Below are positions 1,036 through 29,409 of a DNA stretch of 64,000 bases, one piece after another; position 1 is the stretch's first letter, and each line of letters opens with the position of its first letter. Below the pieces are notes generated by a model that made no database searches, was not told the DNA's origin, and was given only the letters and a program-made list of their open reading frames with translations. Made by a program: the position numbers and the translations under genes. Location of the stretch: sequence record MK308676.1; one strand, given 5' to 3'.

Positions 1036-1037
1036 AC

Positions 1038-10043: not shown

Positions 10044-10113
10044 GATTATTTCCTTTTTAGCTGTACTAGAAAATTGAGGCCTAGTGTTTATTTTACAACT
10101 AGGCCATATAGGT

Positions 10114-10452: not shown

Positions 10453-10509
10453 TGGAATATCCTTCTGTTATTTAAAACGTCGCTCGCTATCATATAGGAG
10501 GACTTATCG

Positions 10510-11368: not shown

Positions 11369-12889
11369 TTATTCCCCTTTCTTACGATAGGCGTTAGCGT
11401 TCTCGATACCGCCGCTCCATAAAGAACATAGACCCAGTAGTTCGAGGAAGCTTTCTTTCGAATCGATGCTGCGCACGGGAGAGAAGGTAAAGTCTTCACG
11501 ACAATAGTCCTTATCCGCAACAAACTTCATCCACTCGACTTGGTTAGGTAAGTCGTGCGTATGACGTAAGCTACCTAAGGACTGGTTGTATGAAGCCATC
11601 GCCCATAACGCGTAGGTGTGTTCTCCATCACTCTCTACAATATGCTCCCACGTGACATCGCCGTATCCCGGCAAACATGCAACTGGAACAGGCGCATCTT
11701 GAACCTTAGAGAACCGACAAGCTGCCCCGAAGTTTAGCATCTCCGCGGTTAGCTCTTGACAACCTCGAGGTACAAAGAACGCCCCGATGATGCCACTAGG
11801 GCCAGTCTTGTTGCGGCCGACTTCTACTTCCACATAGTGACCATTATGGAGCTCAACAGCACGCGAGATACGAAGGCTGTACGTAGACATGAACTTCAGA
11901 GTCTCAGGCACGCCGCAGAAGTTACCTCCCTTTTTCTCGGTCACTCCTCGAATTATAGGTACCGTACCATTACTACCTAACTGTAACATGGTCTGCTTAC
12001 TTACAGCTAAGACCTCCATTGCCATATGTGCCAACGCCAGCGTTTTCTTATTACCGGTCTCTGACATGTTAGGCATGTACAGTGTAGTGTCGGCCACGGC
12101 GAAGTCACCAGACATAGGTACGATTCCGGCCGAAGCTGCCATGCGTAAGCTGGCCTTATAGCTAGAAAGATTATTAGGTAGAGAAACGCAGTTTTCTAGC
12201 AAATATTCCGAGCGGGCTTGATGTGGGCAATCCATGTAGACGTGAATGGTCATAGGCGATGCAGTTTCCATTATCTGCTTATGCAGCCAATCGGTCAGCA
12301 AACGACGGAACACGATATATTCTTCAGATGAAGATACCAAGATATGACCATTGGGCATACCTACGTATTCTTCGCCAGAAGCGTGTACCTTTCTCATGCC
12401 GAGAAGAACATCCATCCATGTCTTAGTTTGAATCGGCATAGGTAAACGCGGGAACGTAGGGAATACCTGCCCAGCTAACCCTAGAGGCTTTACCTGTCCG
12501 GTATAGAAGTAACCGTTCCATTTAGGGTCTGCGACTATATCCTCAATATCGTCGTAGCGCTCGATATAACGGCAAAGGACACCGACCACGTGATTTAGAA
12601 GATGACTGATTTCAGAGATATTGACCTTATCGTTCATGTAATCGTCCATAGTCACATTGACTTGGTCGTCCCACTTAACGAAAACTTCACACAGGTGGTT
12701 ATTAGCGTTCACGTCATTTACCATAATGACGTCGGCCTTCACGAAATGTTCATCACGTTCGGTGATGATAACGTCTACCGACTTCGTTCCGTAGATGCCG
12801 TAAAAGTTCTCTTTTACAGGAACCAGTTCGGTTTTAAGTGAGCCTTGGTCGTTCTTATGGATAAAGAAAGATACTGGAATCTTTTTCAT
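11369..12889 (-). CDS. UvsX/RecA-fold protein with apparently degenerate P-loop
   Basis: RLPMPIQTKTWMDVLLG...GEEYVGMPNGHILV resembles the RecA/UvsX pre-Walker-A segment; GVPETLKFMSTYSLRI and VEVGRNKTGPSG resemble RecA-family C-terminal strands. No GxxxxGK[ST] found. Confidence 0.45.
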   Translation of the reverse strand: MKKIPVSFFIHKNDQGSLKTELVPVKENFYGIYGTKSVDVIITERDEHFVKADVIMVNDVNANNHLCEVFVKWDDQVNVTMDDYMNDKVNISEISHLLNHVVGVLCRYIERYDDIEDIVADPKWNGYFYTGQVKPLGLAGQVFPTFPRLPMPIQTKTWMDVLLGMRKVHASGEEYVGMPNGHILVSSSEEYIVFRRLLTDWLHKQIMETASPMTIHVYMDCPHQARSEYLLENCVSLPNNLSSYKASLRMAASAGIVPMSGDFAVADTTLYMPNMSETGNKKTLALAHMAMEVLAVSKQTMLQLGSNGTVPIIRGVTEKKGGNFCGVPETLKFMSTYSLRISRAVELHNGHYVEVEVGRNKTGPSGIIGAFFVPRGCQELTAEMLNFGAACRFSKVQDAPVPVACLPGYGDVTWEHIVESDGEHTYALWAMASYNQSLGSLRHTHDLPNQVEWMKFVADKDYCREDFTFSPVRSIDSKESFLELLGLCSLWSGGIENANAYRKKGE

Positions 12890-12894
12890 GTTAG

Positions 12895-13338
12895 TTACTC
12901 CATTCCGTCTAGGATAAGAGGGATGCTCACTTCTAGGTCAACGTCACCGTCTTCAAGATGGTATTTGAAACGTGCCTTACCTAGTTCAGCATCTAGAGGT
13001 GCGTCGTCGTTTAGACAACAGAACCAAGTCGCTCTTAGCTTGCCAGGTTCGTTAAAGTCGCTAAGTTGCAGCGGCGGAAGGTTCGCCCACGTACCGTCAT
13101 TCTCGTCCATGTCTTCCCATTCTTTGTTAAAGATGAAGTGTAGTGTATTTTCAAACATGTTGTTGATGACAGACGTAGTGGTAGTATATGCGTCCAGTTT
13201 AGACGCACGGCCATCGATGTGACAAACGGCTAGGTAGCCAGTATCAACCATCTCTACTGCACCCTTTGCGTGCTCATTTAGAAGTCCTGTCTCAGAAACG
13301 ACTTTAACAGAAACTGGATTTACTTTTAGGCCTTTCAT
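12895..13338 (-). CDS. Hypothetical protein
   Basis: 147-aa ORF, GAGG RBS. Confidence 0.7.
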   Translation of the reverse strand: MKGLKVNPVSVKVVSETGLLNEHAKGAVEMVDTGYLAVCHIDGRASKLDAYTTTTSVINNMFENTLHFIFNKEWEDMDENDGTWANLPPLQLSDFNEPGKLRATWFCCLNDDAPLDAELGKARFKYHLEDGDVDLEVSIPLILDGME

Positions 13339-13408
13339 GTTGTTATCCTCTAATTTTATGTGTCATACTCGACACGTTTTATTCACTACTATAAGGAATA
13401 GTAATTTG

Positions 13409-13960
13409 ATGCAAATGTTCTTAACCGTACTTCGCTTCTTTGTTCTTCTACCTTTCCACTGGCTTGTGACGTTGCTTTGCTACATCCTAGCTCCAGTGTT
13501 ACCTTTAACCGCTATTGGTAAAGAGACGTTACCTAAATGGCTTTCGTGGTTCCAAACGCCTGACGCTCCACTCGATGGAGATTTAGGTTTCCGTTTAGAA
13601 CATGAAGCCAAAGGAACACATCCTTATCTACAGCGCGTCTATTGGTTATGGAGAAATCCAGCATATGGTTTCTCTTGGGGACTCTTAGCTTATCAATCTA
13701 TCAAAGGAATGAAGATTCATACCTTGGGCGATATTAAAGCGAAAGATGACCCTTATAAGGCAGGTTGGTCCATTAGCTGGACTGAGGACAAGAAGGCGTT
13801 TCAAGTACGGGCGTTTGTTCCAACCATCCCTGGTAAGTGTTTAAAGTTTAGGTTCGGTTGGAAACTGCGTTGGTTAGTCAACGACTGTAACGGAATTGCG
13901 AATGGCTCCAAACGTAAGTTCGTCTTCACTTGCAACCCGTTCAAATCTCGCCGTCCTTAA
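13409..13960 (+). CDS. Trp-rich phage membrane-associated protein
   Basis: Hydrophobic N-terminus, WLSWFQTPDAPLDGD and YWLWRNPAYGF motifs. Start moved to 13409 (AAGGAA RBS). Confidence 0.7.
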   Translation: MQMFLTVLRFFVLLPFHWLVTLLCYILAPVLPLTAIGKETLPKWLSWFQTPDAPLDGDLGFRLEHEAKGTHPYLQRVYWLWRNPAYGFSWGLLAYQSIKGMKIHTLGDIKAKDDPYKAGWSISWTEDKKAFQVRAFVPTIPGKCLKFRFGWKLRWLVNDCNGIANGSKRKFVFTCNPFKSRRP

Positions 13961-13974
13961 TTAAGTTAGCCATT

Positions 13975-13998
13975 GGTCTCTTACTTCGGTAAGAGACC
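13975..13998 (+). terminator. Intrinsic terminator
   Basis: GGTCTCTTAC-TTCG-GTAAGAGACC followed by TTTTTT. Confidence 0.85.
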
Positions 13999-14053
13999 TT
14001 TTTTCTTTTTACCCAAAAGAAAAGGCCCTATTCAAAGGGCCCCGTAGGTAGTG

Positions 14054-14878
14054 TTAGTTTTCTAGTGCTTTAACTAGAGTTTTAGCTTCCGGTAGGGTCA
14101 GCTTAGATTCCAATAGGAATTTATCCAGAGCGTCACATACAGGAATCGTAGTGATGACGGTATTGTCCATCGTGATAGGCTGAGTCTTATCACGGACCCA
14201 AAGAATCTTCTTCTGACCATTGCGGAACTCGCGCCCAGTAAGCCCACACTTCTTAGAGCCCATGCGAGCCTTGAAGTTAGAGAACGATAGTGCATATGTG
14301 CCGCCATGGTTCTCTACAAAGACACCGAACTCCATGTATGCGCGTGCTAAGAACAGTTCATTGTTCTCACTGCGCATCTCTTCGCTAAAGACGAAGAACG
14401 GAAGACCTTCTTGATTGAAAGACTTATGTTCCGGGACAATAGCGGCCTTTTCACCAGCGGCTAAAATGGTGGCACCGCAGTAACGTTCGCGAATTCCGCG
14501 TAAAGCTTCAGGGTTGAAGAGTGTTGCACAAAGCTTGTTACGAACTTCCATGAGGTGCTTACGTTGCGGCGTACTCGTATCATGGGACTCGAACAAGCGA
14601 GCTTTCTCTTCATTAGCGTCGTGGCGAACCAGACACACGTTACCTTTCTGATAAGGTAAGGCATTGTCGATACGCTCAATAGTAACACTATCCTCTTTAC
14701 GTTCATCGTTCGAGAGAACCATGGGTAGGCCAGTATAATCACAGACACCGCCGTTGCGACGGAATAATTCACGCCAGTCATCGAGCGACAAGCGGAAACC
14801 AATATCACGAGAGCGCTTGCTTTGTGCTTTCGTTTCGTATTTGCGGTCCACTAATTGCTCATCGTACCATACAGACAT
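14054..14878 (-). CDS. HNH-like (beta-beta-alpha) domain protein with duplicated module, possibly T4 Srd-like
   Basis: RDIGFRLSLDDWRELF...CDYTG...VTIERIDNALPYQKGNVCLV...N; a degenerate second copy follows (YALSFSNFKARMGSKKCGLTG). Confidence 0.5.
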   Translation of the reverse strand: MSVWYDEQLVDRKYETKAQSKRSRDIGFRLSLDDWRELFRRNGGVCDYTGLPMVLSNDERKEDSVTIERIDNALPYQKGNVCLVRHDANEEKARLFESHDTSTPQRKHLMEVRNKLCATLFNPEALRGIRERYCGATILAAGEKAAIVPEHKSFNQEGLPFFVFSEEMRSENNELFLARAYMEFGVFVENHGGTYALSFSNFKARMGSKKCGLTGREFRNGQKKILWVRDKTQPITMDNTVITTIPVCDALDKFLLESKLTLPEAKTLVKALEN

Positions 14879-14962
14879 AATGTCTCCTTTGTTGGTCGTT
14901 GTAAAAAGATTAAGGTAAGAATAAGAAACCCTCATCTCCCGAAAGAGATGAGGGGGATGTTA

Positions 14963-15904
14963 TTAAGGTTGTTTAACAGAGCACTTGAATTGACGCTGGC
15001 CAAAACGAGTCATGCGGTAAGCTGCTAAGAACTCACCGACCAGTTCATATTCGAAGTCAGTATGGCCGTCACCACTGGCAGCAGTTCGAACTAACTTCAT
15101 GTCCCAACGTTTTTCGTATGCGGTCGCTCCGACGGATTCGTCCGAGATTCGAAGAATACGGTCACCGTCAGCATCATAGACGATGACGTCACCGTTCACT
15201 TCAACTGACTTACGGAGTACGTCGTTTTTATCGTACATCAATGTCATGTGCTGTTCGTAATTATCGCCGATTGAAACGAACGAGTAGAAGTCCGCGCCTT
15301 GCGCCGTATGCGTATGCCATTGTCGTGCAGACGAAATGATGTCACCGCTAACGTAGTTTACAAGCGCACTGCTGAACTCATGTCCTTTACCGCGCTTAGC
15401 AGTGAAGGTTGTCTTCGGTCCCTTGGTAGGCGTTGAAATGCAATGTGTTTCAAACCCGTCTTCCGTCATAGTAATGAGATAGTTGAACTTCTCTCTATTT
15501 TCCGTCAGGAAACATTCGTCGGCGGGTTTAGGATTAAGGCTCTTCATTGGCTCCGGATAAGAACCGAAACGACATGGCGCCTCAGGATTCTTAGGGAAAC
15601 GGAACACTTCCTTACCGTTTAGACAATGTAGTGCCAAGTCGAAGTAAACGAAACTTTCGGTCTCGACAAGAGTTCGGCAGAACTTACTGAGAGCAGAGCC
15701 AGTCAGGTGCTCCGCACCAGTTAATTGAGAGAAGTCACATTGGAACAGTTCCCATGCGTTTAGTTTAAGTACGCCCATGCGAAGGATGAAATCCATGTCC
15801 ATCTCAGAGACGTCGCTTAGAATCGCGCGCAGGATAGCTTTAGTTACAGGGACTTTAGTAAGGGCAGACTTAGCTTTAGTTAGGTCAACGGTTTTAATTT
15901 TCAT
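14963..15904 (-). CDS. Hypothetical protein, member of dispersed beta-hairpin-rich paralogue family
   Basis: Helical N-terminus followed by YD/RHS-like hairpins (LMYDKNDVLRK, VYDADGDRIL). Confidence 0.75.
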   Translation of the reverse strand: MKIKTVDLTKAKSALTKVPVTKAILRAILSDVSEMDMDFILRMGVLKLNAWELFQCDFSQLTGAEHLTGSALSKFCRTLVETESFVYFDLALHCLNGKEVFRFPKNPEAPCRFGSYPEPMKSLNPKPADECFLTENREKFNYLITMTEDGFETHCISTPTKGPKTTFTAKRGKGHEFSSALVNYVSGDIISSARQWHTHTAQGADFYSFVSIGDNYEQHMTLMYDKNDVLRKSVEVNGDVIVYDADGDRILRISDESVGATAYEKRWDMKLVRTAASGDGHTDFEYELVGEFLAAYRMTRFGQRQFKCSVKQP

Positions 15905-16009
15905 AATGATATTTCCTTTCAATATCGTTTCTTATTTTAAGAAACATTTAAGTAAAGCTGCTACGTTTTCACAGCCGAGGTACGTCCTCTTTAGGACGCA
16001 TGCATAAAG

Positions 16010-16020
16010 GTAATATAGGT
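16010..16020 (-). promoter_or_regulatory. Putative phage early promoter ACCTATATTAC
   Basis: Exact 11-mer also at 31806 and 45461, each upstream of a minus-strand block; contains TATATTAC, the phiKZ early-promoter consensus as I recall it. Confidence 0.6.
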
Positions 16021-16049
16021 GACAGTTTTTATTGAGTGACAAGCCTTTT

Positions 16050-16058
16050 AATCTTATG
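16050..16058 (+). promoter_or_regulatory. Putative late promoter AATCTTATG
   Basis: Exact 9-mer also at 45486 and 53561, each 30-60 nt upstream of a plus-strand gene; contains TATG, the phiKZ late consensus as I recall it. Confidence 0.45.
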
Positions 16059-16110
16059 GTGCACCAACGCGCTCTATCCCGACTTTGGTCGGCCTAAGAG
16101 GGAATATAAA

Positions 16111-16842
16111 ATGATTACTAATCAAAGCTTCATTACGCAGCTTTATACTTTTAGTAGCGGTACCCTGACGCCTCTCCCTTACTTCATCATAGAGGAACAG
16201 GACTACGACTACTTAAAGGAAACCGCCGATGTTGCAAGCGGACTTTATCCAATTGTAGATGAAGACATCAGTGATGGGATACGTGCCGACACAATCGGCA
16301 TACGCGACGATAAGGTCATGTTCGTACAAGGGAACGGACAAGAGATTGAACTCAAAGTTAATCGCGGCTATGTACCTAAACATAGTGCCATTCGTAACTA
16401 TAGTAAGGAAGACTTCGTTGAAGTTTCTGACGAACTATACGTAAGAAAAGAAGCAGGACGTTCCGCATGGGGTGTTGACGAATGGGTCAAGTTAAAGTCA
16501 GGACACAAGGTCTCTGAGATTTTCTACTACGATGCTCGCACTCAAAGCACGGTAGGTAAACAAGCTACAGGTATCGTGGTAATCGCAGAAGATACTCGAT
16601 TCTTTAACCGAGTCATTGTGCCGGGCGATAGCATCCTAATCGACTTCGCACATGAACTACAAAACTTTTCCTTGCAAGTAGCAGCCAATGGTTCTGTTGA
16701 GTTCACCATTGCTGACAGCATCGATATAGAAGCCATGGAAATTAATGAAGACGGTGAGTTGGTTTTTGAACATGCACTCGCTAGTTCAGACACGGCTAAC
16801 GTCTACGTCGATGACGACGGCTACCTAATCGTAGAAGAATAA
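16111..16842 (+). CDS. Putative virion/tail-associated protein
   Basis: Acidic, beta-rich; first gene of the tailspike island. ATG 16111 after GAGGG RBS. Confidence 0.7.
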   Translation: MITNQSFITQLYTFSSGTLTPLPYFIIEEQDYDYLKETADVASGLYPIVDEDISDGIRADTIGIRDDKVMFVQGNGQEIELKVNRGYVPKHSAIRNYSKEDFVEVSDELYVRKEAGRSAWGVDEWVKLKSGHKVSEIFYYDARTQSTVGKQATGIVVIAEDTRFFNRVIVPGDSILIDFAHELQNFSLQVAANGSVEFTIADSIDIEAMEINEDGELVFEHALASSDTANVYVDDDGYLIVEE

Positions 16843-16855
16843 AGAGGTAAAGGAA

Positions 16856-17410
16856 ATGGTTAAAACAGTAGTAGGTCGCATCCGTGGCGATAAGTACAAC
16901 GGCCATGATGTCAGCCAGGCCTATAAGAAACTAGACGAAGTCTACGATGATGGTAAAGCGTATGTCTGTAAACAGGACGTAGCTGAAAACTCCAACACTC
17001 CTTTATCCGATGAAACTAAATGGCAGCTCTTTGCCACCTTTACTACTTACGGTACCTACTTCACGCATGACTCCAACCGAGCTTATGTCGACGGTGACCA
17101 AGTGTGGATTGATAACAAGGTCTACGTAGCAATCGATGACATTCCAGCAGATAGTGACATCCCGTTAACGGACGATACTAAGTGGGAAGTCCGCCTTACC
17201 GGCGGAGCGGAAAGTTTGCCAGTCGAGTTAAGACATGCGATTGATTTCAGAACCGTAGATGAAGATTTGCGACAACTATCTGAAAACCTTCTTATGGCAG
17301 CTCCTACTAAACCTCCAAGATTGCCCGGACTTATAAAGGTTTGCCCTTCTTTGAGTAAGCGTTATATTTCCGTAGGCACAACAGCGGCTTCTGATTGGGA
17401 GGAATTCTAA
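16856..17410 (+). CDS. Tail-associated protein with two CBM5/12-like repeats
   Basis: Two Y..GD.V....K.Y.....I.....PL.D.TKW repeats; N-terminus paralogous to 18690. Confidence 0.65.
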   Translation: MVKTVVGRIRGDKYNGHDVSQAYKKLDEVYDDGKAYVCKQDVAENSNTPLSDETKWQLFATFTTYGTYFTHDSNRAYVDGDQVWIDNKVYVAIDDIPADSDIPLTDDTKWEVRLTGGAESLPVELRHAIDFRTVDEDLRQLSENLLMAAPTKPPRLPGLIKVCPSLSKRYISVGTTAASDWEEF

Positions 17411-18675
17411 TGACTGATATCTATCTAAAGAAAGTAGCGACCGGTTCTGGTAACGGTTCGGGCTGGGACAATGCTAAAGCGTTTACGGACTCCACGGCTT
17501 TAAGAGTGGACCTAGAGACCTTACGCGCAGGCGATACTCTCTATATCGGTAACGACTTCGGTAAACGTGACTGGCTAGAAACAGACATCCTGATGATAGT
17601 CAACGCTGTGAACGGTACAGAAGATGACCCTATCACTTTCTGTGGCTCTGCCGTAACAGACACTACGGAACTACATGCGGCAGCAAAAGGTAAGGGCCCT
17701 ATCTTCCATGGCGGGGCAGAGGCGCCGATGCGCCTAGGTGACTCAAAAGGAGTAGACTTCCTCAGAGTTGAAAGAGACCACTATAAATTCTTGGGATTAA
17801 ACCTGGTCAACGCAGGTTACTTCCTGACAATACGCAATCGTCCAGTCACTGGGATAACGGTGGCAGACTGTCAGACCTACGGAACGGAATTAGTTTTCTC
17901 TTGCGGCGCAGGAGACTCGGACGTTACTGGCTTGGATGTCTCCAACTTCATAGCTGGTAATGTCTCTGGTGGTTTTGGTCTCTTTAGAAACGGTAAGAAA
18001 TTAAGTTTCAGCGACGTGCATGTCTCCCATAGTGAGGAGACGACTGACGTCTTCGGACTAAAGTTCGGTGCAGCCGGAGATGCGAGCAGCGTAGTCGAAG
18101 AGATACTCGTCCGCGATTCTTCTTTTACAGGCGGCTATAACTTTAACGGCTCGCCTTCTTACGTTCAGGGCGACGGCATTATTGCCGAGATTGGCACTTC
18201 TGAAATAGACATCGACAACGTGCGCATTAGTCTATACGGCGATGCCGCAATTGACCTGAAGTCCACCAATGCCAGAATCAAACGTGCGGACATCCAGAGA
18301 TGTAAGTACGGCATCAAGCTGTGGGGCCTTGGCGAGAACTTAATCGAAAACTCCATCGTGAGTAACTGTTCCTTAGGTGCCATTCAGTGCATCGCTGACA
18401 TCGTGGCTAAGAACAGTACCTTTAAGGGCACGGCCGACAGTAAATGCTTATTGAACCTAACGAAGAATAACCTCGACGGGGATAAGCTGGGCGAACTAAC
18501 CCTGGAAGATTGCGTCCTGGAATATCCAGACCCAAGCCGTCTTATCTACGGCTATGCCGGTAACAAAGTACACATGAAGAACTGCATGGTGAACGGAGTG
18601 CTCATTAAAGAGACTAAGTTCCTTCTACCGGCGCAGGGCTCATTCGGCATTGTAGATGACCTAACTGACTTTTAA
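17410..18675 (+). CDS. Right-handed parallel beta-helix (pectin lyase-like) protein, putative tailspike/depolymerase
   Basis: GNGSGWDNA start; QGDGIIAE...IDNVRISLYGDAAIDLKS...CKYGIKLWG...IENSIVSNC PbH1-like repeats. TAATG coupling with GGAGG RBS. Confidence 0.7.
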   Translation: MTDIYLKKVATGSGNGSGWDNAKAFTDSTALRVDLETLRAGDTLYIGNDFGKRDWLETDILMIVNAVNGTEDDPITFCGSAVTDTTELHAAAKGKGPIFHGGAEAPMRLGDSKGVDFLRVERDHYKFLGLNLVNAGYFLTIRNRPVTGITVADCQTYGTELVFSCGAGDSDVTGLDVSNFIAGNVSGGFGLFRNGKKLSFSDVHVSHSEETTDVFGLKFGAAGDASSVVEEILVRDSSFTGGYNFNGSPSYVQGDGIIAEIGTSEIDIDNVRISLYGDAAIDLKSTNARIKRADIQRCKYGIKLWGLGENLIENSIVSNCSLGAIQCIADIVAKNSTFKGTADSKCLLNLTKNNLDGDKLGELTLEDCVLEYPDPSRLIYGYAGNKVHMKNCMVNGVLIKETKFLLPAQGSFGIVDDLTDF

Positions 18676-18689
18676 GGAAGGAGACTAAC

Positions 18690-19169
18690 ATGTCTAAAAC
18701 TGTTGTGGGTCGAATTCGTGGCGATAAATATAAAGGCCACAATCCGAACCAAATTTACAAGAAGTTGGACGAAGTCTACATTTCAGGTATGGCATTCCTT
18801 TGTCTCGAGGATATAGAGATTAACTCTAATATCCCTTTGACGGATGTTACGAAGTGGCAAGAGTTCGCTTCGCTTGAAACTCTACGTATCCACTACGCAC
18901 ATGACGTGAATGCTGAGTACTTTAAAGACGAGCAGATGTGGGTAGGCGGTAAAGTGTATGTTGCTTTAGCAGATATCCCTGAAAACTCTAATGTAGATTT
19001 AACCGACGACACTAAGTGGGAAGAACTTCTTGCTAGTGAAGCTCTTGCTCCTACGGCTAACGACAAGATTACCATCACAGGCTTTACTGACCTGGGCGAT
19101 GGTAATTGGCAAGTGACGCCCCCCTGCGGGTTACGTACATTACGTACATATTGCTGGCGCCTCGCCTAA
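18690..19169 (+). CDS. CBM-like N-terminal module of second tailspike (5' part of frameshifted gene)
   Basis: Paralogous to 16856 (KTVVGRIRGDKY.GH...YKKLDEVY); sequence becomes unnatural after the C6 run at 19119-19124. Confidence 0.65.
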   Translation: MSKTVVGRIRGDKYKGHNPNQIYKKLDEVYISGMAFLCLEDIEINSNIPLTDVTKWQEFASLETLRIHYAHDVNAEYFKDEQMWVGGKVYVALADIPENSNVDLTDDTKWEELLASEALAPTANDKITITGFTDLGDGNWQVTPPCGLRTLRTYCWRLA

Positions 19170-20649
19170 CTACTTCGCTGAAGTTTCTACTATTGTAGAA
19201 CTTTCTAAGATTGGTGACTGGACGCGTGAAGGCGGACAGCTAACTATCCGTTGGCCTTCTAACCTAAACGACCTGGACGTGTTCCTCACTATGGGTTCTA
19301 GCTCCTCTGTGGCATACTACGGCATGGAAGTAGACGAGCCTGGGGAAATCCATAACCAAAACACTTACGGTGGTTTGCGTGGCTTTACAGTTACGGCTCT
19401 GGCACATCTGTTCCATTGTAAAGCAGAGAATGCTAACTTCCACGGTTTCGATATGCAGTTCCCTGGAGCTACACTGAGTCATTGTGAGAGCCATCACAAC
19501 GGTCAGTGGGACAAAGGCGAGACAGGTAACAATGTCGGTCACGGTGTTCTTATGCGTCGTGGCGGTACAGTGCGCCACCATAAGTCATATTGTCAAGCTG
19601 AAGATGGTTACCAAATTGGTACAGCCGTTCAAGGCAATGTTGCAGAGAACGATGAGTTTACTCTGGAACACTGTGAAGCGTACTACTGTTCTGAGGACAT
19701 GTTCGATATTAAAGAGACAGGTAAGAAATTAACCATTCGTCACTTTAGAGGACATGGCGCACTCGACTCAGCAATCAACTACCACCCGAATGTAGGCTCG
19801 GGTTTAGTAGAGATTACAGATGGGCGCTTCTCAGGCACCGTACAGATGCTTCGCGTCGCTCAGGTTGAATCTAGCATCCCTGCTAAGTTCAACACTGCCC
19901 GTAATGTCTTCGATGCTTCTAACCGTGGCTGGTCAGATAGTTCTGCTCCATGTTTCGATTGGAAGGCCAGTATCGATAATGCAGATGCTTACTTTGTCTC
20001 TATGGCGGACGTTTTCATCGGCGGCGGTACTCGCGGTATCTCTGACAAGCACGTAGTCAACATCAAGGGCGCTGGTAAGGTTAAACTGTTTAACCCGACC
20101 ATTCACGTGCCTTCTACTCCGAACGCAGGAGACGTTTCTGCAATCGGTATGTATGGTACGGCCGCTGTTGAGATTTACAACGCGTGCCTAACTAACTATG
20201 GCGGTGGTACCCGCGGCATCCTTGAAGTTGACGATAACACTCGCAGTATTAAGATTGCAGATTCTGTAATGTATGTCAAAGACGGGGACGACAATACGGT
20301 CTATGTGACTGTTGGTTCGACTACCTATACTAAGGCAGACATTGAAGGTGCAAACTTCGGCGGGGAAGGCAACATCGTAGACGGTAGCGTGGAGCTAACT
20401 AATCTATACATCAAATCGCCTAACTACATGGACGAAGCTAATAACCTACTAGCTCCTCTTTACATTACGCCACATATGGCAAACCACGGTCTAGCTGTGA
20501 ATGCGCCAATGAAAGACGTAATGGGTCTACCATTCAACCACTGGAGTTGGATGGGCGGTTCTGAGAACGTTAGTATGGGCGTTGGCGCTTACCATGCCTA
20601 CAGCGGACGAATGCTCCGTGCTAAGAATTCACATACTCTAGCGAAATAA
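19117..20649 (+). CDS. Beta-helix tailspike/depolymerase (3' part of frameshifted gene)
   Basis: Frame open from 19117, not only from the called GTG at 19279. PbH1-like repeats (HGVLMRRG, EDGYQIG, EDMFDIK, DSAINYH). Confidence 0.65.
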   Translation, partial: RPPAGYVHYVHIAGASPNYFAEVSTIVELSKIGDWTREGGQLTIRWPSNLNDLDVFLTMGSSSSVAYYGMEVDEPGEIHNQNTYGGLRGFTVTALAHLFHCKAENANFHGFDMQFPGATLSHCESHHNGQWDKGETGNNVGHGVLMRRGGTVRHHKSYCQAEDGYQIGTAVQGNVAENDEFTLEHCEAYYCSEDMFDIKETGKKLTIRHFRGHGALDSAINYHPNVGSGLVEITDGRFSGTVQMLRVAQVESSIPAKFNTARNVFDASNRGWSDSSAPCFDWKASIDNADAYFVSMADVFIGGGTRGISDKHVVNIKGAGKVKLFNPTIHVPSTPNAGDVSAIGMYGTAAVEIYNACLTNYGGGTRGILEVDDNTRSIKIADSVMYVKDGDDNTVYVTVGSTTYTKADIEGANFGGEGNIVDGSVELTNLYIKSPNYMDEANNLLAPLYITPHMANHGLAVNAPMKDVMGLPFNHWSWMGGSENVSMGVGAYHAYSGRMLRAKNSHTLAK

Positions 20650-20664
20650 AAAAAAAATAAGAGT

Positions 20665-20688
20665 CCCTACTGGCCGAAGCCAGTAGGG
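20665..20688. terminator. Bidirectional intrinsic terminator
   Basis: CCCTACTGGC-CGAA-GCCAGTAGGG between convergent genes, A-tract before and T-tract after. Confidence 0.85.
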
Positions 20689-20694
20689 GTCTTT

Positions 20695-21006
20695 TTATTC
20701 GTCTTCAGACGGGAACGTCTCGTCGATTACGAGGCCTTGTTTCTTAAGAGACTTCGCTCGAGCCACAGCGACGTCGATGTGACAAACCATGTGACAAAGA
20801 AACTTAGAAGCATCGCGTTTGCCTACCTGGTGAGATTCATACCACCACTTAAAACCGTCTAGGTAAATACATGCGTTCTTATCGCCGTCTTCAGTTACTT
20901 TAAGTAACATTGACTGCGGGATAAAGAAGTCGATGTAAATATGCTCAAGACCTTGCTTCTTGGCTTTCTTGATTTGCTTTTTAACGCGCTTTTTATTACC
21001 TGCCAT
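20695..21006 (-). CDS. Hypothetical protein, basic N-terminus
   Basis: Start moved to MAGNKK at 21006 (GAGG RBS). Confidence 0.65.
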   Translation of the reverse strand: MAGNKKRVKKQIKKAKKQGLEHIYIDFFIPQSMLLKVTEDGDKNACIYLDGFKWWYESHQVGKRDASKFLCHMVCHIDVAVARAKSLKKQGLVIDETFPSEDE

Positions 21007-21043
21007 AATAGGTGCCTCTTTTATCTTAAGTTCGAAATGTTTT

Positions 21044-21334
21044 TTATTTTTGGTCGTGGTCAACCGATATGGTACAAAGGCTTAAACTAAAGTAGACCGT
21101 CTTATGGTCGACGACGCCTTTGTAGACGCGATTGATGCCGTTCTCTGTAAAGTCTTTAACGTCCGTTTTCTTTACCCAAAGATAGTGACTACCGTGTCGT
21201 CCGCAGTCGACGTACATGTGTTGTACCACGCCGCCTAAATCACGGACTGCGTCGCTAACCTCATAAGGCTTCGGGAAAGCGTCCACGTTGAAAGAAGATA
21301 GGCACAGAAGTAGTAAAGCGAATAATTTTTCCAT
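21044..21334 (-). CDS. Small secreted/periplasmic protein
   Basis: Signal-peptide-like MEKLFALLLLCLSSFNVDA; two Cys in the mature part. Confidence 0.65.
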   Translation of the reverse strand: MEKLFALLLLCLSSFNVDAFPKPYEVSDAVRDLGGVVQHMYVDCGRHGSHYLWVKKTDVKDFTENGINRVYKGVVDHKTVYFSLSLCTISVDHDQK

Positions 21335-21398
21335 GGTGTTCTCTCTTTAAGATAGAAATGATTAAGCTCCCTCTCCCGAAGGAGAAGGAGTACTTAGT

Positions 21399-23231
21399 TT
21401 ATACGGTGAACTTGCTTAGAGCAACACCTTGCTCTTCACATAGTTCCATTACTTCACCCAGTTCGTCTTTAGACTTAGCAGAGCCGTCAGAGATTTCCTG
21501 AGATAGGTCTTTCACTCGAGTAGCGTTGAGGTTAATCTCATTGCTTACAAGCGATTGCTGTTCTGATGCTGTAGCGGTCTGAATAGACATGCTGGTAATC
21601 TCAGAGACAGCTTTAGAGATGTCGTTAAGGTTAGAAGCGGCAACAGCTGCTTTATCAATTGCCCCATCCGTAGAAGCCTTACCGTCCTCAATGGTCTCAA
21701 AGACTTCTTGAGCGTGGTTAGTAATCTCTTCTAGAATGGTATTGATTTGAACTGTGCTTTCTTGCGTATCCTTGGCTAGCTTACGAACTTCGTCTGCTAC
21801 CACTGCAAAACCTCGACCTGCATCGCCTGCACGTGCTGCTTCAATTGCTGCGTTAAGTGCAAGTAAGTTGGTTTGGTCTGCCACGCCAGAAATAACTTCC
21901 AGTACTTCGGTGATACTTGCCGTAGAACCGATTAGGTTAGTAGTAGTGTTTACAGCGCTCTCCATTACTTCACCTACGTGAGTAATAGCCGCTGATGTAG
22001 CTTCTACAGAATCCAGACCAGAACGTACAGAGGTTTCTGCCTCTTCTGTACTAGCCGCGGTAGATTGAGCATTAGATGCAATCTCTACGCTAGATGCTGC
22101 CATCTCTTCCATAGCTGAAGCTAGTGACTCTAGCTCTGCCATTTGTTCAGTTACATTGCTTACGTTCTGAGTAGACACTGCTCCCACAGAGATGACTGCA
22201 TTACTAATGCCGCCAGATATCTCTTTAAGGCGCTGTACGTCTTTCTGAAGGTTCGCAGCAAACGTATTGACAGATTGTGCCATGGCAGCAAACTCTTCGT
22301 CAGAGTCTTCGCTAATGCGTTTAGTGAGGTCTGCTTCACCAGAAGCTAAATCCTGTAAAGCATTGCGTAGTTCTTGAAGAGGACGCATTAGGTACATCGC
22401 TGTTACAATAGCTAGACCAGATACTACAGCAGTGGTAATACCGGCAATGATAAGTAGTAGTACAAGTAAGTCTTTGACTGGCTGCTCAATAACAGAAGTC
22501 GGTTTCTTAACGTCTACTACCCAACCCGCAGAAGGAATAGTAACTAACACAGTAGTCATTTCTTCTTTAGGTGCTTTCTGCTGACGGATGTTCTTGCCGA
22601 TTAAGTACTCGTCTTTATGTGCAATGATGTTACTCGTTGCTTTACTGTAAAGGACAAGTTCCGTACCGTTAACATGAGCAATGCGGTTTAACTCATCGCC
22701 TAGTTCGCCTAGGTTAGTATCAAAGAACACAGCACCGTCATTCTTACCGTTCTTGTAAACAGGAATGGCAATTGACGTTACGAGTTCTTGAGTGGCTAAG
22801 TCTACGTACGGTTCAGTTTGGATAGGTTTACCCGCAGCTATTGAGTCCTTGTACCAGTCGCGTGTACGGCCGTCGTAGTTCGCGGGCATACGGCTTTCCG
22901 GTACAGACGTAGTAAACTCACCTTCGCGGTTTACATAACCCACCATGTCGAAAGCATTCAGTAGAGTAGCTCCCTTTAATAGGTGGGCTGCTTCTTCCAT
23001 ACTTTCGGTTTTGGATAGACCATCTGCGATAGCTTTAGCTAAAGTCATGTTGCCGTCTAACTGTCCCGTAATACGAGAAGCCATGTTGTCGGCAGTGAGT
23101 GAAAGAGAATCTTTAGCATTCTCTAGAATCTGTTCTTTCTCGACTTGGTAAGTAACGCCGGTCAGAACACCGCCCATAATCAATGGGATAATAATAAATG
23201 ATGCGAATAACTTAGTCTTAAAATTAAACAT
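21399..23231 (-). CDS. mcp: Methyl-accepting chemotaxis protein (TM1-dCache_1-TM2-HAMP-signalling domain)
   Basis: Signalling tip [37 protein letters not shown]-type (here VADQTNLL...); [28 protein letters not shown]; methylation EE/EQ pairs; dCache YDGRTRDWY...EPYVD...FFD. Start moved to 23231 (GGAG RBS). Confidence 0.95.
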
Positions 23232-23266
23232 GATAGTTCTCCGAAATACAAAAAGGAAAAGAAGCA

Positions 23267-23296
23267 ACAGTAGCCAACCGCATGGTTGGCTACTGT
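23267..23296 (-). terminator. Hairpin/terminator between YadA-like gene and MCP
   Basis: ACAGTAGCCAAC-CGCATG-GTTGGCTACTGT; T-rich run follows on the minus strand. Confidence 0.65.
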
Positions 23297-23331
23297 ATAT
23301 GCTTACAGGTAGCTCTCTTGAGAGCTTGTCA

Positions 23332-23772
23332 TTAGTAGCTGTATGCTACGCCAGCACCTGCTGCTACATCTTCAAAGTCGCCGCTCACGATTGTAGCTGC
23401 AACGTGAACTTTACCAGTCCAGTTTTCGTTGATGCGGTATGCGCCACCGATTGCTAGAGCTTGTGCGTCACCTGCTGTACCAACACCGAAACCAAACTTA
23501 CCAGTTTCAGCGTCAATAGTGGTGTGTGCTTTAGCGCCGTTACCTAGGTCAGTCTCAGTACGGATTACTGAGTCGTTACTTTCCACAGGCATGTTAGCTA
23601 GACGTGCAGCTTCTAGGCGAGCGCCGCGTTCTAGTTCTAGGTTGGCGTAGAAGTCGTCAGAGACTTCAGTCATTACAGTTGCGTCAACAACGTTAGAGTT
23701 GCAGATACAGTTGTCGTTTGCGATAGCAGTAAAAGAAGTAGATAGTAGTAGGGCGATTAGTAGGTTTTTCAT
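23332..23772 (-). CDS. Minimal YadA-like trimeric autotransporter (signal peptide, short stalk, 4-strand anchor)
   Basis: [18 protein letters not shown] signal; A..AA.LA.MP linker helix; FGFGVG...[14 protein letters not shown]...AGAGVAYSY anchor ending in an aromatic residue. Confidence 0.8.
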
Positions 23773-23897
23773 AATAAATTCTCCGATATGAAAAAGTACC
23801 CTAACTGCATCAACGCAGTTAGGGCATATGGCAAAGATTAAAGGGACTTAATTGTCCAAGCTCACTATGATAATATGGGTTTTAGATTTCCTTGAAA

Positions 23898-24839
23898 TCA
23901 AATCTCCACGTCATCGTCAGGCTTCCACCCGAAGATAAGTTCTTTTCTAGCGTTCTCTAGCGCATTGAAATCAGGCAAGCCGTTAATAGGGAAACGCATG
24001 CTGGTACTGTAAGAAGCATCGCCTTCATAGATGCGGTCTACAACCATACAAGAGCCATTAAGGCAGTAATAGCCCACGCGGCGGCCCTTATCATCACGCA
24101 AGGTAATCTCTTTGAGGTCACCCGCCAGAGAAGTAAAGATAGAACCATCGCCTACGGAAAGGAATGACTTCGGAAACTCTCCGTCTTCACGTACCTGATG
24201 GCGGTATCTTAAATCGCCCGCATGGAAGCGGTCACGGATAAAGATAGTCGGTAACGCATCTTTATGACTAATCTCTAACTTCTCAGTGCGGCCCGCCTTA
24301 CTTAGCACTTTAACGCATTCTTCAGGTGCTACTGGCGGCTCATGTACTGCTTCCGCTAACTCTCCATTATCGTCCCAAGTTTGACGAACCGTTGTTTTAA
24401 GTTCGCCATCGCAATACCATTCTCTTAGCACAAGACGTTTACCGCCACAGGAGAAAAGTTTCACACAGAGAACCTCACGGTCTTCGTGTGTGTATTTGGT
24501 CTCCACGCGATAGATGCCCGCACCTTCATGAGTAATAGTACGTACTGCTTCCGTTACTTCAGGGCGGTCGTTAAAGACTAGCGTTGCCTGGGCGTCCGGT
24601 AAGCAGAAATGGAAAGCTTTAACGTGCTGACCGGTTTCATCCCACGTACACCATGCACCCTTCTCTAATACTTCGGCTACTTGGTCTACCCAAGAACCTT
24701 CAGCTAGAGCCGGCATATGGCGAAACTGAATTAGTGCGTGTTCGCCCATATGGTTTCGCATGACCTCCCCTGTTTGCGGAAGGTCTAGCAACTCTAAGAT
24801 TACTGGCGGGATTGAATATAACATATCGTTATCCGACAT
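23898..24839 (-). CDS. Hypothetical protein, dispersed paralogue family
   Basis: 313 aa; hairpin repeats (TWDDNGELAE, LRDDKGRRVG). Confidence 0.75.
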   Translation of the reverse strand: MSDNDMLYSIPPVILELLDLPQTGEVMRNHMGEHALIQFRHMPALAEGSWVDQVAEVLEKGAWCTWDETGQHVKAFHFCLPDAQATLVFNDRPEVTEAVRTITHEGAGIYRVETKYTHEDREVLCVKLFSCGGKRLVLREWYCDGELKTTVRQTWDDNGELAEAVHEPPVAPEECVKVLSKAGRTEKLEISHKDALPTIFIRDRFHAGDLRYRHQVREDGEFPKSFLSVGDGSIFTSLAGDLKEITLRDDKGRRVGYYCLNGSCMVVDRIYEGDASYSTSMRFPINGLPDFNALENARKELIFGWKPDDDVEI

Positions 24840-25725
24840 TTTCTACCTCTTTTCTATATGTGTTGTAGTCTCCGATAACTGCTATTTCTATGCCATTATG
24901 TTGACTGATTTGAAAACCTACGAAATCACGAAAGATGGGATTACCTTCAGCGTCACCTGTAGTAATGTTCATGTCTAAGAAGTCTATTGCTTTCTTCTCT
25001 TCTTGAAACATACCTGTTTGAGATAGGCCGCCTAAGATAGCTTTCTTTGCGTTCTCTGTGAAAGGCTGTTTACCTTTCGTTAAAAGTTTATTGAAGAGAC
25101 TAACGAAGAACTTTCGGTTTCCTTGTAATCCTTCCGTACTATCTACGAAAGCACACATCTCTACCTTATCGCCTTTACGGTAAACGAGCCGATAGACAAA
25201 CGCTTTAGCGTGTGTTGTCCATAGTTCTTCTCGTATCTTCTCTAATCCTTCCAATACCCATTGATGTGACCCAGGCCTAGCGATTGCCTTCTCTCCTTCA
25301 CCGAAAACATAATAGTGAACGAGCGGCAAACTAGTTTCTGAGAACAGTTGTGCAGTACGACTATTGGACTGTAACTTCAGTCGGTTACAGAAATGGATTT
25401 CATCTCGGAACTCCTCTTCGGGAAAACCGACCCATTCCTCTTCCTTTACTGTAGCTAGAATCTCTTTACCTAACTTCTTCGCTTCATAGCCCCGGGCAGA
25501 CTTTAGTTTGTCTATCTTGGCTTTAACATCGGCAGGCCAAGCTTTATCCAGCATGGTGGTGCGTATGAAGTACCACGCACCTTCCACTGTCTTGAAATAA
25601 CCGAAGTCCGGATGCGAAAAAGAAAGGTCAGCAAAGTGAGTAAGAGCCCGACCTATTTCGGTCTGGCCCTTACTGTACACATTGATGTGGTCGTATCCGT
25701 CTCTATTTGGATTGACCTCCGACAT
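24829..25725 (-). CDS. NADAR-like N-terminal domain protein
   Basis: DGYDHINVYSKGQTEIGRALTHF...FKTVEGAWYF...A..LG...RLK..LVHYY resembles phage NADAR/YbiA-like ADP-ribose-processing proteins; extra C-terminal domain. Confidence 0.5.
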   Translation of the reverse strand: MSEVNPNRDGYDHINVYSKGQTEIGRALTHFADLSFSHPDFGYFKTVEGAWYFIRTTMLDKAWPADVKAKIDKLKSARGYEAKKLGKEILATVKEEEWVGFPEEEFRDEIHFCNRLKLQSNSRTAQLFSETSLPLVHYYVFGEGEKAIARPGSHQWVLEGLEKIREELWTTHAKAFVYRLVYRKGDKVEMCAFVDSTEGLQGNRKFFVSLFNKLLTKGKQPFTENAKKAILGGLSQTGMFQEEKKAIDFLDMNITTGDAEGNPIFRDFVGFQISQHNGIEIAVIGDYNTYRKEVENVG

Positions 25726-26788
25726 AAACCAATAGTTCCTCTTGACTAGTTGGAATGCGAGTTTCGAAATGAACACTATAACGGTCACAGACTAGGTGTA
25801 CTGTCTTACCGGTAGCTGGGTCCAAGCGACGGTCATAATCCGCAAAGTGGCCACCGCCATAAGCGATGCGCTCAATGCGCTTATTAGCGTCCCATTGGTA
25901 GTAGCTACATTTAGGGATGTGTTCGTCACGCACTGTCTTAATCTCGCCATCAATCTCTTTGTGAGGAGTGATGAAGCGATGTGACAGTTTTTGGTAGAGC
26001 ATGTTGTCACGGAAAGTATAAGTATACATAACGTGACCAAAGCGCTCCTGTTCTTGGAACATAGCGCGGTGGTGCGTTACTGTAAACTCGCCCTTGCCTA
26101 GACCCTGGGACATACGCAGAGCCTCACGGTTCTTGTAGTCATCCCAACGGAACTTCTCTTCCACTTCTTCAGGCATGATGTCGTTACGCTCACACATAAC
26201 GCCAAACACAGCTTCCCAACGCTCTTTAAAGATACGCTGTTCACAGAACACGCCAGGGGTTTTAGCACGACGATGATGGTATGCCACATAGCTATTGCTT
26301 TCATTGAATGAAACAAAGCCCATGTAGTGACCGCGCTGAGAATACTGATACACGCGAGTAGTGATGCGCTGGTTTGCTTCAGACGTACATACGGAACGCA
26401 GTAGCTTACCCTCAGTAGAGAAGTAGTATTCGAACCATTGTAGTCCGCTATCTACTGTTGTCTTGATATAGTCATCTTCAAAGATAACTTCGAAATGCAC
26501 TGGAACACGACGAGAGATTTCTTTGTTGTACCCGCGAGACATCATCATGTCAAACGGATGTTCACAAGTAAAACGGAAATCGTCCGAAAGGTCATCCAAG
26601 AATTCTGCATTGTTTAATACTTCTAGTAAAGGCGCCACCAACGAACCACGGTACTGATTAAGTTCTTCTAGAGAACAAGGCACGATACCTTCAGCTTTAA
26701 GGTCATTGGTTAAATCCATTCCTAGGATAGGGATAAGGATTACGTCATTAACTAGTGTTTCCATCGACAGCATATCTGCGTTTTTCAT
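25703..26788 (-). CDS. Hypothetical protein, dispersed paralogue family
   Basis: 361 aa; YYFSTEGKLLR, YQYSQRGHY, YQWDANKRIER hairpins. Confidence 0.75.
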   Translation of the reverse strand: MKNADMLSMETLVNDVILIPILGMDLTNDLKAEGIVPCSLEELNQYRGSLVAPLLEVLNNAEFLDDLSDDFRFTCEHPFDMMMSRGYNKEISRRVPVHFEVIFEDDYIKTTVDSGLQWFEYYFSTEGKLLRSVCTSEANQRITTRVYQYSQRGHYMGFVSFNESNSYVAYHHRRAKTPGVFCEQRIFKERWEAVFGVMCERNDIMPEEVEEKFRWDDYKNREALRMSQGLGKGEFTVTHHRAMFQEQERFGHVMYTYTFRDNMLYQKLSHRFITPHKEIDGEIKTVRDEHIPKCSYYQWDANKRIERIAYGGGHFADYDRRLDPATGKTVHLVCDRYSVHFETRIPTSQEELLVYVGGQSK

Positions 26789-26865
26789 TTTGTGTTCCTC
26801 TGTTTAAATTAGTCATTTTCAATCTCCTGGTACATTGAATTTTGACCGAATGTTATTTATGATAA

Positions 26866-27513
26866 TTAGTGAAGCTCGATGCTTTCGCAATGAACTTTAG
26901 GCTGGTCTTTAGTGAAACCGATAACGGTAACCGAAGAAGGACATACGGCAGACCATAGCCATTCGCCCTCGACTGCTTTAAAGCGGTCTATTCCATTTCC
27001 ACGACAGTAGTAAACCTCTTTTAAGATACCGTCGTTGGCGTGGCCGTGGTAAGTAATCTCGAAGTCTTCAGCGAGATTAGATTGCTGCATTAAGCGTCCT
27101 TTCTCATCAAAACAGCTTACTACGTTTACCTTGCCGTTTGCGGTTTTAAGCGTAGTGCGGTGACCGCCCGTGGCTCGCTCTTCTCGAGTTACCGTGAAGA
27201 TATCGTCATTGGAATCACGGATGTGAAGGAGATGGCCTTCGTCGTTAAAGTAGTAACGCACCGAATGGCGAGTGTAAACATAGCAGTTGCTACTCTCCAT
27301 GAAGTGATAGGCACGTTCTCGGAACCACAGCTCTTTCCCTGCTTTATTAAAGAAGAGGAACGGAGCTTCTGCCTGACCTAGAATGGGGCCAAGGAAAACA
27401 TTCGCCAAATCGATGTTTTTATCAGTTACCGGAATGAGCCCCTTAGACTGCATGATGGCCAACGTTCTGAAGTCTAAAGCGACCTCCAGCATGTCATACG
27501 TAAACTTATCCAT
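26866..27513 (-). CDS. Hypothetical protein, dispersed paralogue family
   Basis: 215 aa; YYFNDEGHLLH, CFDEKGRLMQ hairpins. Confidence 0.75.
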   Translation of the reverse strand: MDKFTYDMLEVALDFRTLAIMQSKGLIPVTDKNIDLANVFLGPILGQAEAPFLFFNKAGKELWFRERAYHFMESSNCYVYTRHSVRYYFNDEGHLLHIRDSNDDIFTVTREERATGGHRTTLKTANGKVNVVSCFDEKGRLMQQSNLAEDFEITYHGHANDGILKEVYYCRGNGIDRFKAVEGEWLWSAVCPSSVTVIGFTKDQPKVHCESIELH

Positions 27514-27751
27514 TAGCTAGTTCTCCTATGGCTTTAGATTGTAGAGGTATCAGGTCATCTTCGCTTTGAGTCCAGACGTCTTCATCGTGAAGGATTACCT
27601 TCTTAATGTCGTAACGGATTTCCATCGGCTTATCTTTACGGAAGATAGGACGGATAGCGATTACTTCACCCTCCAATACTGTGCCCATTGCATTGAACTT
27701 AATGTCCTGGCTCATAGTGAACGCTGGCGTGATTGTGATTTTATTTCCCAT
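27506..27751 (-). CDS. Hypothetical protein
   Basis: 81-aa ORF, coupled. Confidence 0.6.
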   Translation of the reverse strand: MGNKITITPAFTMSQDIKFNAMGTVLEGEVIAIRPIFRKDKPMEIRYDIKKVILHDEDVWTQSEDDLIPLQSKAIGELANG

Positions 27752-28428: not shown

Positions 28429-28471
28429 AGATTATAAGGGAAAGGGCACCCTTTCGAATGCCCTGCTTTTA

Positions 28472-29374: not shown

Positions 29375-29409
29375 TGTATATCTCTCTCTTTTTAAATAAG
29401 TGGTGAGTC

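Follow-up and report, generated by a model that had tools for sequence, protein, structure and literature searches.

The receptor gene and its source

The stretch of DNA considered here, hereafter the window, comprises 64,000 bases of sequence record MK308676.1, and its minus strand carries, at positions 21399 to 23231, a gene for a chemoreceptor of the methyl-accepting chemotaxis protein (MCP) type. The source is Vibrio phage vB_VmeM-Yong MS31 (290,537 bp), whose host is the marine bacterium Vibrio mediterranei. Window bases 15000-30000 match MS31 at 100%, and the isolates XC31 and XC32 match equally. All positions are given in window coordinates, which equal MK308676.1 coordinates minus 186,000. 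Four Yong genomes have been deposited (MK308674-MK308677), of which MK308677.1 is isolate MS32. Yong MS31 is a phiKZ-like jumbo phage, presumed virulent. For the helicase encoded at 51312-53528, homologues were found in 205 phage records, most of them from phiKZ-like jumbo phages that infect Pseudomonas, Erwinia, Vibrio or Aeromonas; its nearest relatives, those of BONAISHI, sm033, pir03 and C-ZP2022, are only ~40% identical to it. In a published comparison, the Yong phages were grouped with lytic jumbo vibriophages such as BONAISHI (PMC7765460). GenBank labels nearly every gene of MK308676.1 a 'hypothetical protein', the receptor gene (QAX96837.1) included, and this label hides a fully recognisable sensory protein. 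As had been read from the sequence alone, the gene stands among phage genes, inside the complete genomes MK308674-76. The features of the gene and of its product are as follows.

21399..23231, minus strand: chemoreceptor (MCP) coding sequence, 610 amino acids plus stop codon, from the open reading frame and Pfam; QAX96837.1
23239..23242, minus strand: ribosome-binding site GGAG, 7 nt before the receptor ATG
23267..23296, minus strand: 13-bp hairpin followed by a T-rich tract, terminator-like, between the upstream neighbour gene and the receptor gene
21367..21390, minus strand: 10-bp hairpin with a TTCG loop, just past the receptor stop codon, read directly
23145..23207, minus strand: transmembrane helix 1, about residues 9-29, from hydropathy windows and an AlphaFold2 helix
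22467..23144, minus strand: periplasmic dCache_1 ligand-binding domain, about residues 30-255, from Pfam, PDB sequence matches, AlphaFold2 and Foldseek
22854..22877, minus strand: amino-acid motif, N-terminal part (Y119, R124, W126), from the alignment to PctA and the published motif
22719..22808, minus strand: amino-acid motif, C-terminal part (Y142 to D171), Y142 beginning 15 residues after W126
22392..22466, minus strand: transmembrane helix 2, about residues 256-280, from hydropathy and the AlphaFold2 model
22242..22391, minus strand: HAMP domain, residues 281-330, from Pfam, with 15 of 18 conserved columns kept
21402..22241, minus strand: cytoplasmic signalling domain of the 40H class with candidate methylation pairs, 140 + 140 residues around the hairpin tip
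21783..21875, minus strand: hairpin tip (residues 453-483), the region in contact with CheA/CheW, with no departure from the columns that are invariant in the family

Architecture of the protein

The open reading frame (ORF) begins with an ATG at 23231 on the minus strand and ends with a stop codon at 21399-21401, giving a protein of 610 residues. A longer, TTG-started ORF reaching to 23267 was rejected, as it overlaps the upstream hairpin and has no ribosome-binding site. The signals around the gene that the sequence-only reading had described were found again: GGAG lies 7 nt before the ATG, and hairpins flank the gene on both sides. Three Pfam domains score above their curated cut-offs, namely dCache_1 (74.4 bits against 45; residues 34-218), HAMP (40.4 bits against 25; residues 277-329, after the second transmembrane helix) and MCPsignal, PF00015 (136.3 bits against 34.6; residues 410-576). 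The dCache_1 match spans only profile positions 2-191 of 240. An AlphaFold2 model of the receptor, built from an alignment of 59 sequences, has a mean predicted local distance difference test (pLDDT) score of 78.7, with values of 84-94 over the sensor. The protein is confirmed as an intact and complete MCP, composed of a first transmembrane helix, a dCache_1 sensor, a second transmembrane helix, a HAMP domain and a 40H signalling domain. The earlier description of an intact, full-length MCP is borne out by the unbroken ORF, the three domain matches above cut-off, the two hydrophobic segments and the conserved tip.

Sensor domain and predicted ligand class

The amino-acid-binding variety of the dCache_1 domain, dCache_1AA, is defined by a two-part motif, which in PctA consists of Y121, R126 and W128 followed by Y144 and D173, the first part being separated from the second by 13-17 residues (Gumerov et al. 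2022, PMC8915833). The phage receptor carries Y119, R124, W126, Y142 and D171, which align residue for residue with the five motif residues of PctA, and the spacing between its two parts is 15, within the published range. In the protein, Y119, R124 and W126 lie in YDGRTRDW, Y142 and D144 in EPYVD, and D171 in FFD. The sequence-only reading had held this motif to be fully present, and all the letters that it quoted were found, at the spacing of 15.

Comparison of the periplasmic part with PDB sequences leads to the same group of proteins. The best match is the PctA sensor (5ltx, E 3e-23), followed by PctB, PctC, Mlp37, CtaA and Mlp24. When the modelled sensor was compared by Foldseek with the amino-acid-bound structures of Mlp24, PctA, Mlp37, CtaA, PctB and PctC, target-normalised TM-scores of 0.72-0.83 were obtained. 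The model consists of two beta-sheet modules, that is, a bimodular Cache fold placed between the transmembrane helices, as in dCache_1 (PF02743). Its distal module is complete, and its shortened membrane-proximal module is still modelled as a compact, four-stranded unit. Motif and modelled fold together support the assignment of the sensor to the amino-acid type, dCache_1AA, as its predicted ligand class.

Signalling domain and compatibility with Vibrio arrays

The cytoplasmic hairpin of the receptor is symmetrical about D470, with 140 residues from the end of HAMP to the tip and 140 from the tip to the C-terminus, corresponding to 20 + 20 heptads. Residues 281-595 align without an indel to every one of 58 homologues, PctA included, while alignment to Tsr, a 36H receptor, needs ~14 extra residues per arm. 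The receptor is of the 40H class, to which the Vibrio System II and the Pseudomonas F6 receptors belong. PctA is listed as 40H (PMC12691637), and in V. cholerae all receptors confirmed in the polar array of the chemotaxis system, System II, are 40H; one V. cholerae 40H receptor belongs to System I, so that the heptad class is not fully predictive (PMC11940527). The features given in the same paper for System III-type (36H) receptors are not found here, since the length class is 40H and the C-terminus, SKFTV, does not follow the pentapeptide pattern. This C-terminal end resembles that of the Vibrionaceae homologues.

The tip, residues 453-483, is identical to the columns that are invariant in the 58 cellular homologues, from Pseudomonas to Vibrio. 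The methylation-site consensus pattern that we used is established knowledge for this family. Strict matches start at residues 371 and 392 and comprise the pairs E375/E376 and E396/E397, and there is a further QQ pair at 558-559. Methylation pairs had been claimed from the sequence, and these two strict matches and the QQ pair are candidates for such sites. The 40H length, the absence of indels and the invariant tip give the receptor the length and the contact surface needed to pack with Vibrio receptors. By these features it appears compatible with Vibrio arrays, a statement of compatibility which does not imply incorporation. No CheA, CheW, CheY, CheR or CheB domain was found in the 78 window ORFs that were scanned, and hence any output of the receptor must run through host proteins.

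Divergence, origin and residence in the phage genome

Among 5.8 billion clustered proteins, the best matches to the receptor are 31-39% identical and come from V. fluvialis, Photobacterium, Shewanella and Marinobacter, with PctA also among them. The protein cluster to which the receptor itself belongs contains three phage genomes only. Its closest full-length cellular relatives form a Vibrionaceae group of 622-624 residues (V. fluvialis, Photobacterium), at 33-39% identity. A tree with cellular MCPs, of the kind that the sequence-only reading had proposed for Vibrionaceae MCPs, was built by neighbour joining, and the receptor stands in it on a long branch, attached outside the Vibrio/Photobacterium/Shewanella clade; its terminal branch is 0.74 substitutions per site long, the median being 0.07.

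Overall identity is ~33%, and only ~27% in the sensor, yet the receptor has kept 105 of the 131 columns (80%) that are conserved at >=90% in cellular homologues. The kept columns include 43 of 48 in the tip, 15 of 18 in HAMP and 14 of 17 in the distal sensor. The composition of the gene is also that of its phage. It has no GATC site, where ~7 would be expected and where the V. fluvialis homologue gene has 13. Its GC content is 44.8%, compared with 46.4 +/- 1.7% for phage genes, and its relative synonymous codon usage correlates with that of phage genes at 0.84, within the range of 0.31-0.89 of the phage genes themselves. GC at third codon positions, 0.377, is about two standard deviations below the 0.459 +/- 0.042 of phage genes. 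The genomes of MS31, XC31 and XC32, each deposited separately, have identical copies of the gene.

Deep divergence, retention of the conserved positions and phage-like composition, taken together, argue for long residence under purifying selection. On these grounds we argue that the gene is genuinely phage-resident and kept by selection. It was probably captured long ago from a gammaproteobacterial lineage of amino-acid receptors, of the PctA or the Vibrionaceae 622-624-residue type. It would be an example, dated by its divergence, of a phage genome that has retained a signalling gene from a host.

The natural isolate without the receptor

A single deletion of 12,421 bp separates the genome of isolate MS32 (278,116 bp) from that of MS31 and accounts exactly for their difference in length. 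The deletion removes thirteen whole genes, including that of the receptor. It truncates the two flanking genes once each and joins both into one in-frame ORF of 349 codons. The genes that define the deletion are the following.

12895..23772 (gene bounds), no strand assigned: thirteen whole genes, that of the receptor among them, found in MS31, XC31 and XC32, absent from MS32
11369..12889, minus strand: flanking gene, 506-residue ORFan, intact in MS31; in MS32 truncated and fused in frame with the 313-residue gene
23898..24839, minus strand: flanking gene, 313 residues, intact in MS31; the other partner of the MS32 fusion

The 506-residue ORFan is unique to the Yong lineage. Recombination between paralogues was considered as the cause of the deletion and rejected, the two flanking proteins being unrelated. 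Synteny with BONAISHI and pir03 was also considered and proved uninformative, as the 506-residue flanking gene is lineage-unique and the core proteins are ~40% identical. Since MS32 lacks the receptor gene, the gene is dispensable for propagation under the conditions of isolation. As a host-type gene within a phage genome, and one that propagation does not require, it is in this sense an auxiliary (moron) gene. Dispensability fits accessory cargo and is silent on a role in nature.

Signals that might drive expression were sought as well. A sigma-70 promoter scan gave 5 matches against 6.2 expected in shuffled sequences, which is not above background, and 7-mer enrichment over 40 upstream regions returned only words resembling ribosome-binding sites and A/T-rich words.

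Other chemoreceptors on viral genomes

A tblastn search of 50,697 phage records found the full-length receptor in three Yong genomes only. Two further records were examined as comparable cases and set aside. That of Pseudomonas phage Y13 is UNVERIFIED and unannotated, with a partial match. The P1-type record MH445380.1 (126.5 kb) encodes an aerotaxis receptor within transposon cargo, which is not phage-adapted; the gene adjoins a beta-lactamase gene, and there are mobile-element genes on both sides. A fold search of BFVD gave no viral chemoreceptor, the best match being a Mimivirus Cache protein, and a full-text literature search found no paper on this gene or on any receptor in a virulent jumbo phage.

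Uncultured viruses yielded more. A scan of IMG/VR with the single receptor protein found nothing; when the family alignment was used, receptor-like genes at 27-46% identity came up on 177 viral contigs, with no orthologue among them. Most of these matches sit at the edges of prophages predicted in isolate genomes and are therefore probably host flank. Among the PHROGs, the family phrog_8572 (E 5e-74) is receptor-like and of unknown function. Chemoreceptor genes have been listed as auxiliary genes on Desulfovibrio vulgaris prophages (PMC9448743) and on Nitrosospira phages (bioRxiv 10.64898/2026.05.02.722434). An uncultured large phage contig, here called L082 (IMGVR_UViG_3300016725_000002, 161,660 bp), encodes at 9089-10834 a complete receptor of 581 residues with 4HB_MCP_1 and MCPsignal domains. 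This gene lies 5 kb from a 954-residue tail-sheath gene, and an HNH endonuclease is found there too; among cellular proteins, the receptor of L082 is closest to those of Desulfovibrio, at 55-57% identity. Contig L082 is an independent second case of a complete receptor borne by a virus.

The sequence-only reading had remarked that chemoreceptors are not standard cargo of lytic phages. This stands in so far as they are very rare in cultured phages, where no other verified record among the 50,697 has a complete one; it needs amending in that receptors on prophages and viral contigs exist and have already been reported. The receptor family is known, and the protein described here joins it as a new and deeply divergent member; viral cargo of this kind is likewise known, though it has hardly been explored. 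The unusual part is the carrier: this jumbo phage is phiKZ-like and cultured, and it has a natural sibling that lacks the gene.

Comparison with known systems

The receptor resembles PctA, PctB and PctC, the chemoreceptors of Pseudomonas aeruginosa for amino acids and gamma-aminobutyric acid, in the order of its parts (transmembrane helix, dCache_1, transmembrane helix, HAMP, 40H signalling domain), in the five-residue motif and in the identical tip; with PctA it aligns free of indels over residues 281-610. It differs from them in being phage-encoded, in its ~32% identity, in a proximal module that is 13 residues shorter and in the replacement of P125 by D. With Mlp24 and Mlp37 of Vibrio cholerae, which respond to amino acids and taurine and belong to the System II polar array, it shares the sensor fold (Foldseek TM-scores 0.72-0.82); Mlp24 is likewise 40H, and V. 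cholerae and the host of the phage belong to the same genus. In contrast, sensor identity to Mlp24 and Mlp37 is only 21-25%, and the closest full-length relatives of the receptor are another Vibrionaceae group.

The receptors of the D. vulgaris prophages, of the Nitrosospira phages, of phrog_8572 and of contig L082 are similar in that a virus carries a complete receptor but not the other components of the pathway, and the role proposed for them is likewise a modification of host sensing. Unlike the Yong receptor, they belong to prophages or uncultured contigs and have other sensor types (4HB, sCache or other dCache). The Yong case combines a cultured phiKZ-like jumbo phage, an amino-acid sensor and a deeper divergence (<=39% identity, against 55-57% for L082). 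Vibriophage VP882 has its own quorum-sensing receptor, a cytoplasmic transcription factor that controls the lysis decision of the phage. The likeness is conceptual, as both are vibriophages with a small-molecule sensor of their own; the Yong receptor is of the membrane type, and its only known output is the motility pathway of the host.

Proposed role and alternative explanations

Our tentative explanation, which we put slightly short of evenly probable, is that the gene encodes a working receptor, which becomes part of the host array and supplies the infected cell with an additional amino-acid input. It is favoured mainly because the ligand pocket, HAMP and the tip have all been preserved, although the divergence is so great that parts not under selection would no longer be recognisable. 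The receptor would be made during infection and anchored in the inner membrane by its two transmembrane helices, and would then be taken into the host's own CheA/CheW polar array, an uptake suggested by its sharing the 40H length class and the tip with the receptors that build Vibrio polar arrays. Once in the array, it could add an amino-acid input to the control of swimming in the infected cell, or reweight one that is present. The likely gain would be more substrate for the replication of a 290-kb genome and the release of progeny where hosts are dense, and the receptor would be accessory cargo, outside the replication core. Recurrence also speaks for a working receptor, as the unrelated 162-kb contig L082 has a complete one with a different sensor.

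Several observations weigh against this explanation. The membrane-proximal module of the sensor lacks 13 residues that are present in all 58 homologues, and P125, which stands beside the motif arginine and is conserved in >90% of them, is D in the receptor. Losses of conserved columns concentrate in the C-terminal adaptation helix (16 of 26 kept) and in the proximal module (3 of 6 kept). These losses and the shortening could mean that signalling or adaptation is altered or impaired. Directly upstream of the gene there is a terminator-like hairpin, and no recognisable promoter was found. The gene occurs in a single phage lineage, in identical copies, and has no orthologue in other phages; none of the other records among the 205 with the helicase has it. 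Finally, isolate MS32 propagates without it.

Some of these observations could be read as signs of a different role. The receptor might jam the host, entering or titrating the CheA/CheW array while locked in one state, and so abolish or bias chemotaxis regardless of ligand; this might serve to keep the infected cell in place, to save energy or to change flagellar rotation. A perfectly conserved tip, an adaptation helix that has lost 10 of 26 conserved positions, charge changes included, and a signal-transmitting proximal module that is 13 residues shorter would all suit such a protein. However, pure jamming needs no ligand pocket, yet the five motif residues and 14 of 17 distal positions are kept at ~27% sensor identity; HAMP keeps 15 of 18 conserved positions, and two strict methylation-consensus sites remain. 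We therefore regard jamming as unlikely. An improbable explanation, too, is that the gene is passenger cargo in a dispensable, ORFan-rich segment, unexpressed or without effect on phage fitness. A neutral gene would be expected to decay over such a distance, but this ORF is intact at <=39% identity, its family-critical positions are kept far above background, its GATC sites have all been purged and its codon usage is phage-like. The passenger explanation draws its force from the segment itself, all of which is missing from MS32 and one of whose flanking genes, that of 506 residues, is lineage-unique, and from the upstream hairpin, the lack of an identifiable promoter and the lack of an orthologue in other phages.

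It seems very unlikely that the receptor senses amino acids and passes its output to another Che-like system of the host, or to a phage partner, instead of to flagellar chemotaxis. Vibrios do have several Che systems, one V. cholerae 40H receptor belongs to System I (PMC11940527), and the sequence is strongly diverged outside the tip; against this, every System II receptor that has been confirmed is 40H, the C-terminus lacks the pentapeptide pattern of System III, and no partner gene was seen in the window. A chimeric assembly with host DNA, which the sequence-only reading had named as fatal to its own proposal, or contamination with such DNA, has a negligible probability: the <=39% identity to any bacterial protein, the absence of GATC (13 sites in the Vibrio homologue gene) and the phage-like composition (GC of 44.8% and codon usage within the phage range) exclude it. 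Further points against a chimera are the three identical deposited genomes and the length difference of MS32, which equals one deletion exactly.

An effect on behaviour, whether by steering or by jamming host chemotaxis, is plausible, and would be compatible with the 40H class, the invariant tip and the retained ligand motif. That a virulent jumbo phage places an amino-acid receptor of its own in the host array and redirects the swimming of a doomed cell is a rather doubtful proposition at present; if true, it would be the first case of virus-directed bacterial navigation. Whether viruses alter the behaviour of infected bacteria, beyond their metabolism, is largely an open question, and chemotaxis governs where marine vibrios feed and where they meet hosts such as corals and algae. 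With a cultured host, four deposited genomes, a precisely defined receptor of predictable ligand class and a natural isolate without the gene, the question of virus-steered swimming could be answered here by expression and structural data.

Neighbouring genes and other features of the window

Directly upstream of the receptor gene lies one further gene of the segment missing from MS32.

23332..23772, minus strand: upstream neighbour, 146 residues, secreted, with a YadA-type outer-membrane anchor (Pfam 3.2e-10; weak PDB match to YadA)

Its product has a cleavable-looking signal peptide, a short passenger and a trimeric-autotransporter anchor that ends in an aromatic residue. Two bacterial-type envelope proteins, the YadA-anchor protein and the receptor, are thus encoded in tandem. 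The wider neighbourhood consists mostly of ORFans, together with an HNH endonuclease, a DUF7338 protein and a beta-helix protein. Within the segment missing from MS32, the genes at 14054-14878 (minus strand), 16856-17410 (plus strand) and 17410-18675 (plus strand) encode an HNH endonuclease (phrog_3118, 9e-44), a protein with a weak match to a chitin-binding module and a right-handed beta-helix protein, respectively; this group of genes may have surface-directed functions. At 24829-25725 (minus strand), the first 170 residues of the product are related to a YbiA/DUF1768-type family (phrog_652), and this protein was found in 523 phage records from many hosts.

Elsewhere in the window, the gene at 352-1056 (minus strand) encodes a protein of 234 residues with a C-terminal helix-turn-helix domain of the Cro/C1 type (Pfam 7e-09), in a phage that is presumed virulent. 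The gene at 34734-35198 (plus strand) encodes an anaerobic ribonucleotide reductase activating protein, so named in the MS32 record. Matches to Fer4_12 (1e-57) and Radical_SAM (1e-6) were obtained among 58 scanned window ORFs, in an output that does not specify the matching ORF, and they probably belong to this activating protein.

The sequence-only reading had noticed no GATC in the receptor gene or in the window, and the count in the whole 64,000 bases is indeed 0, against ~246 expected. This absence suggests strong genome-wide avoidance of some GATC-directed host system. Across the window, CTAG and GTAC occur at expectation, and AATT, TATA and ATAT at about half of it.

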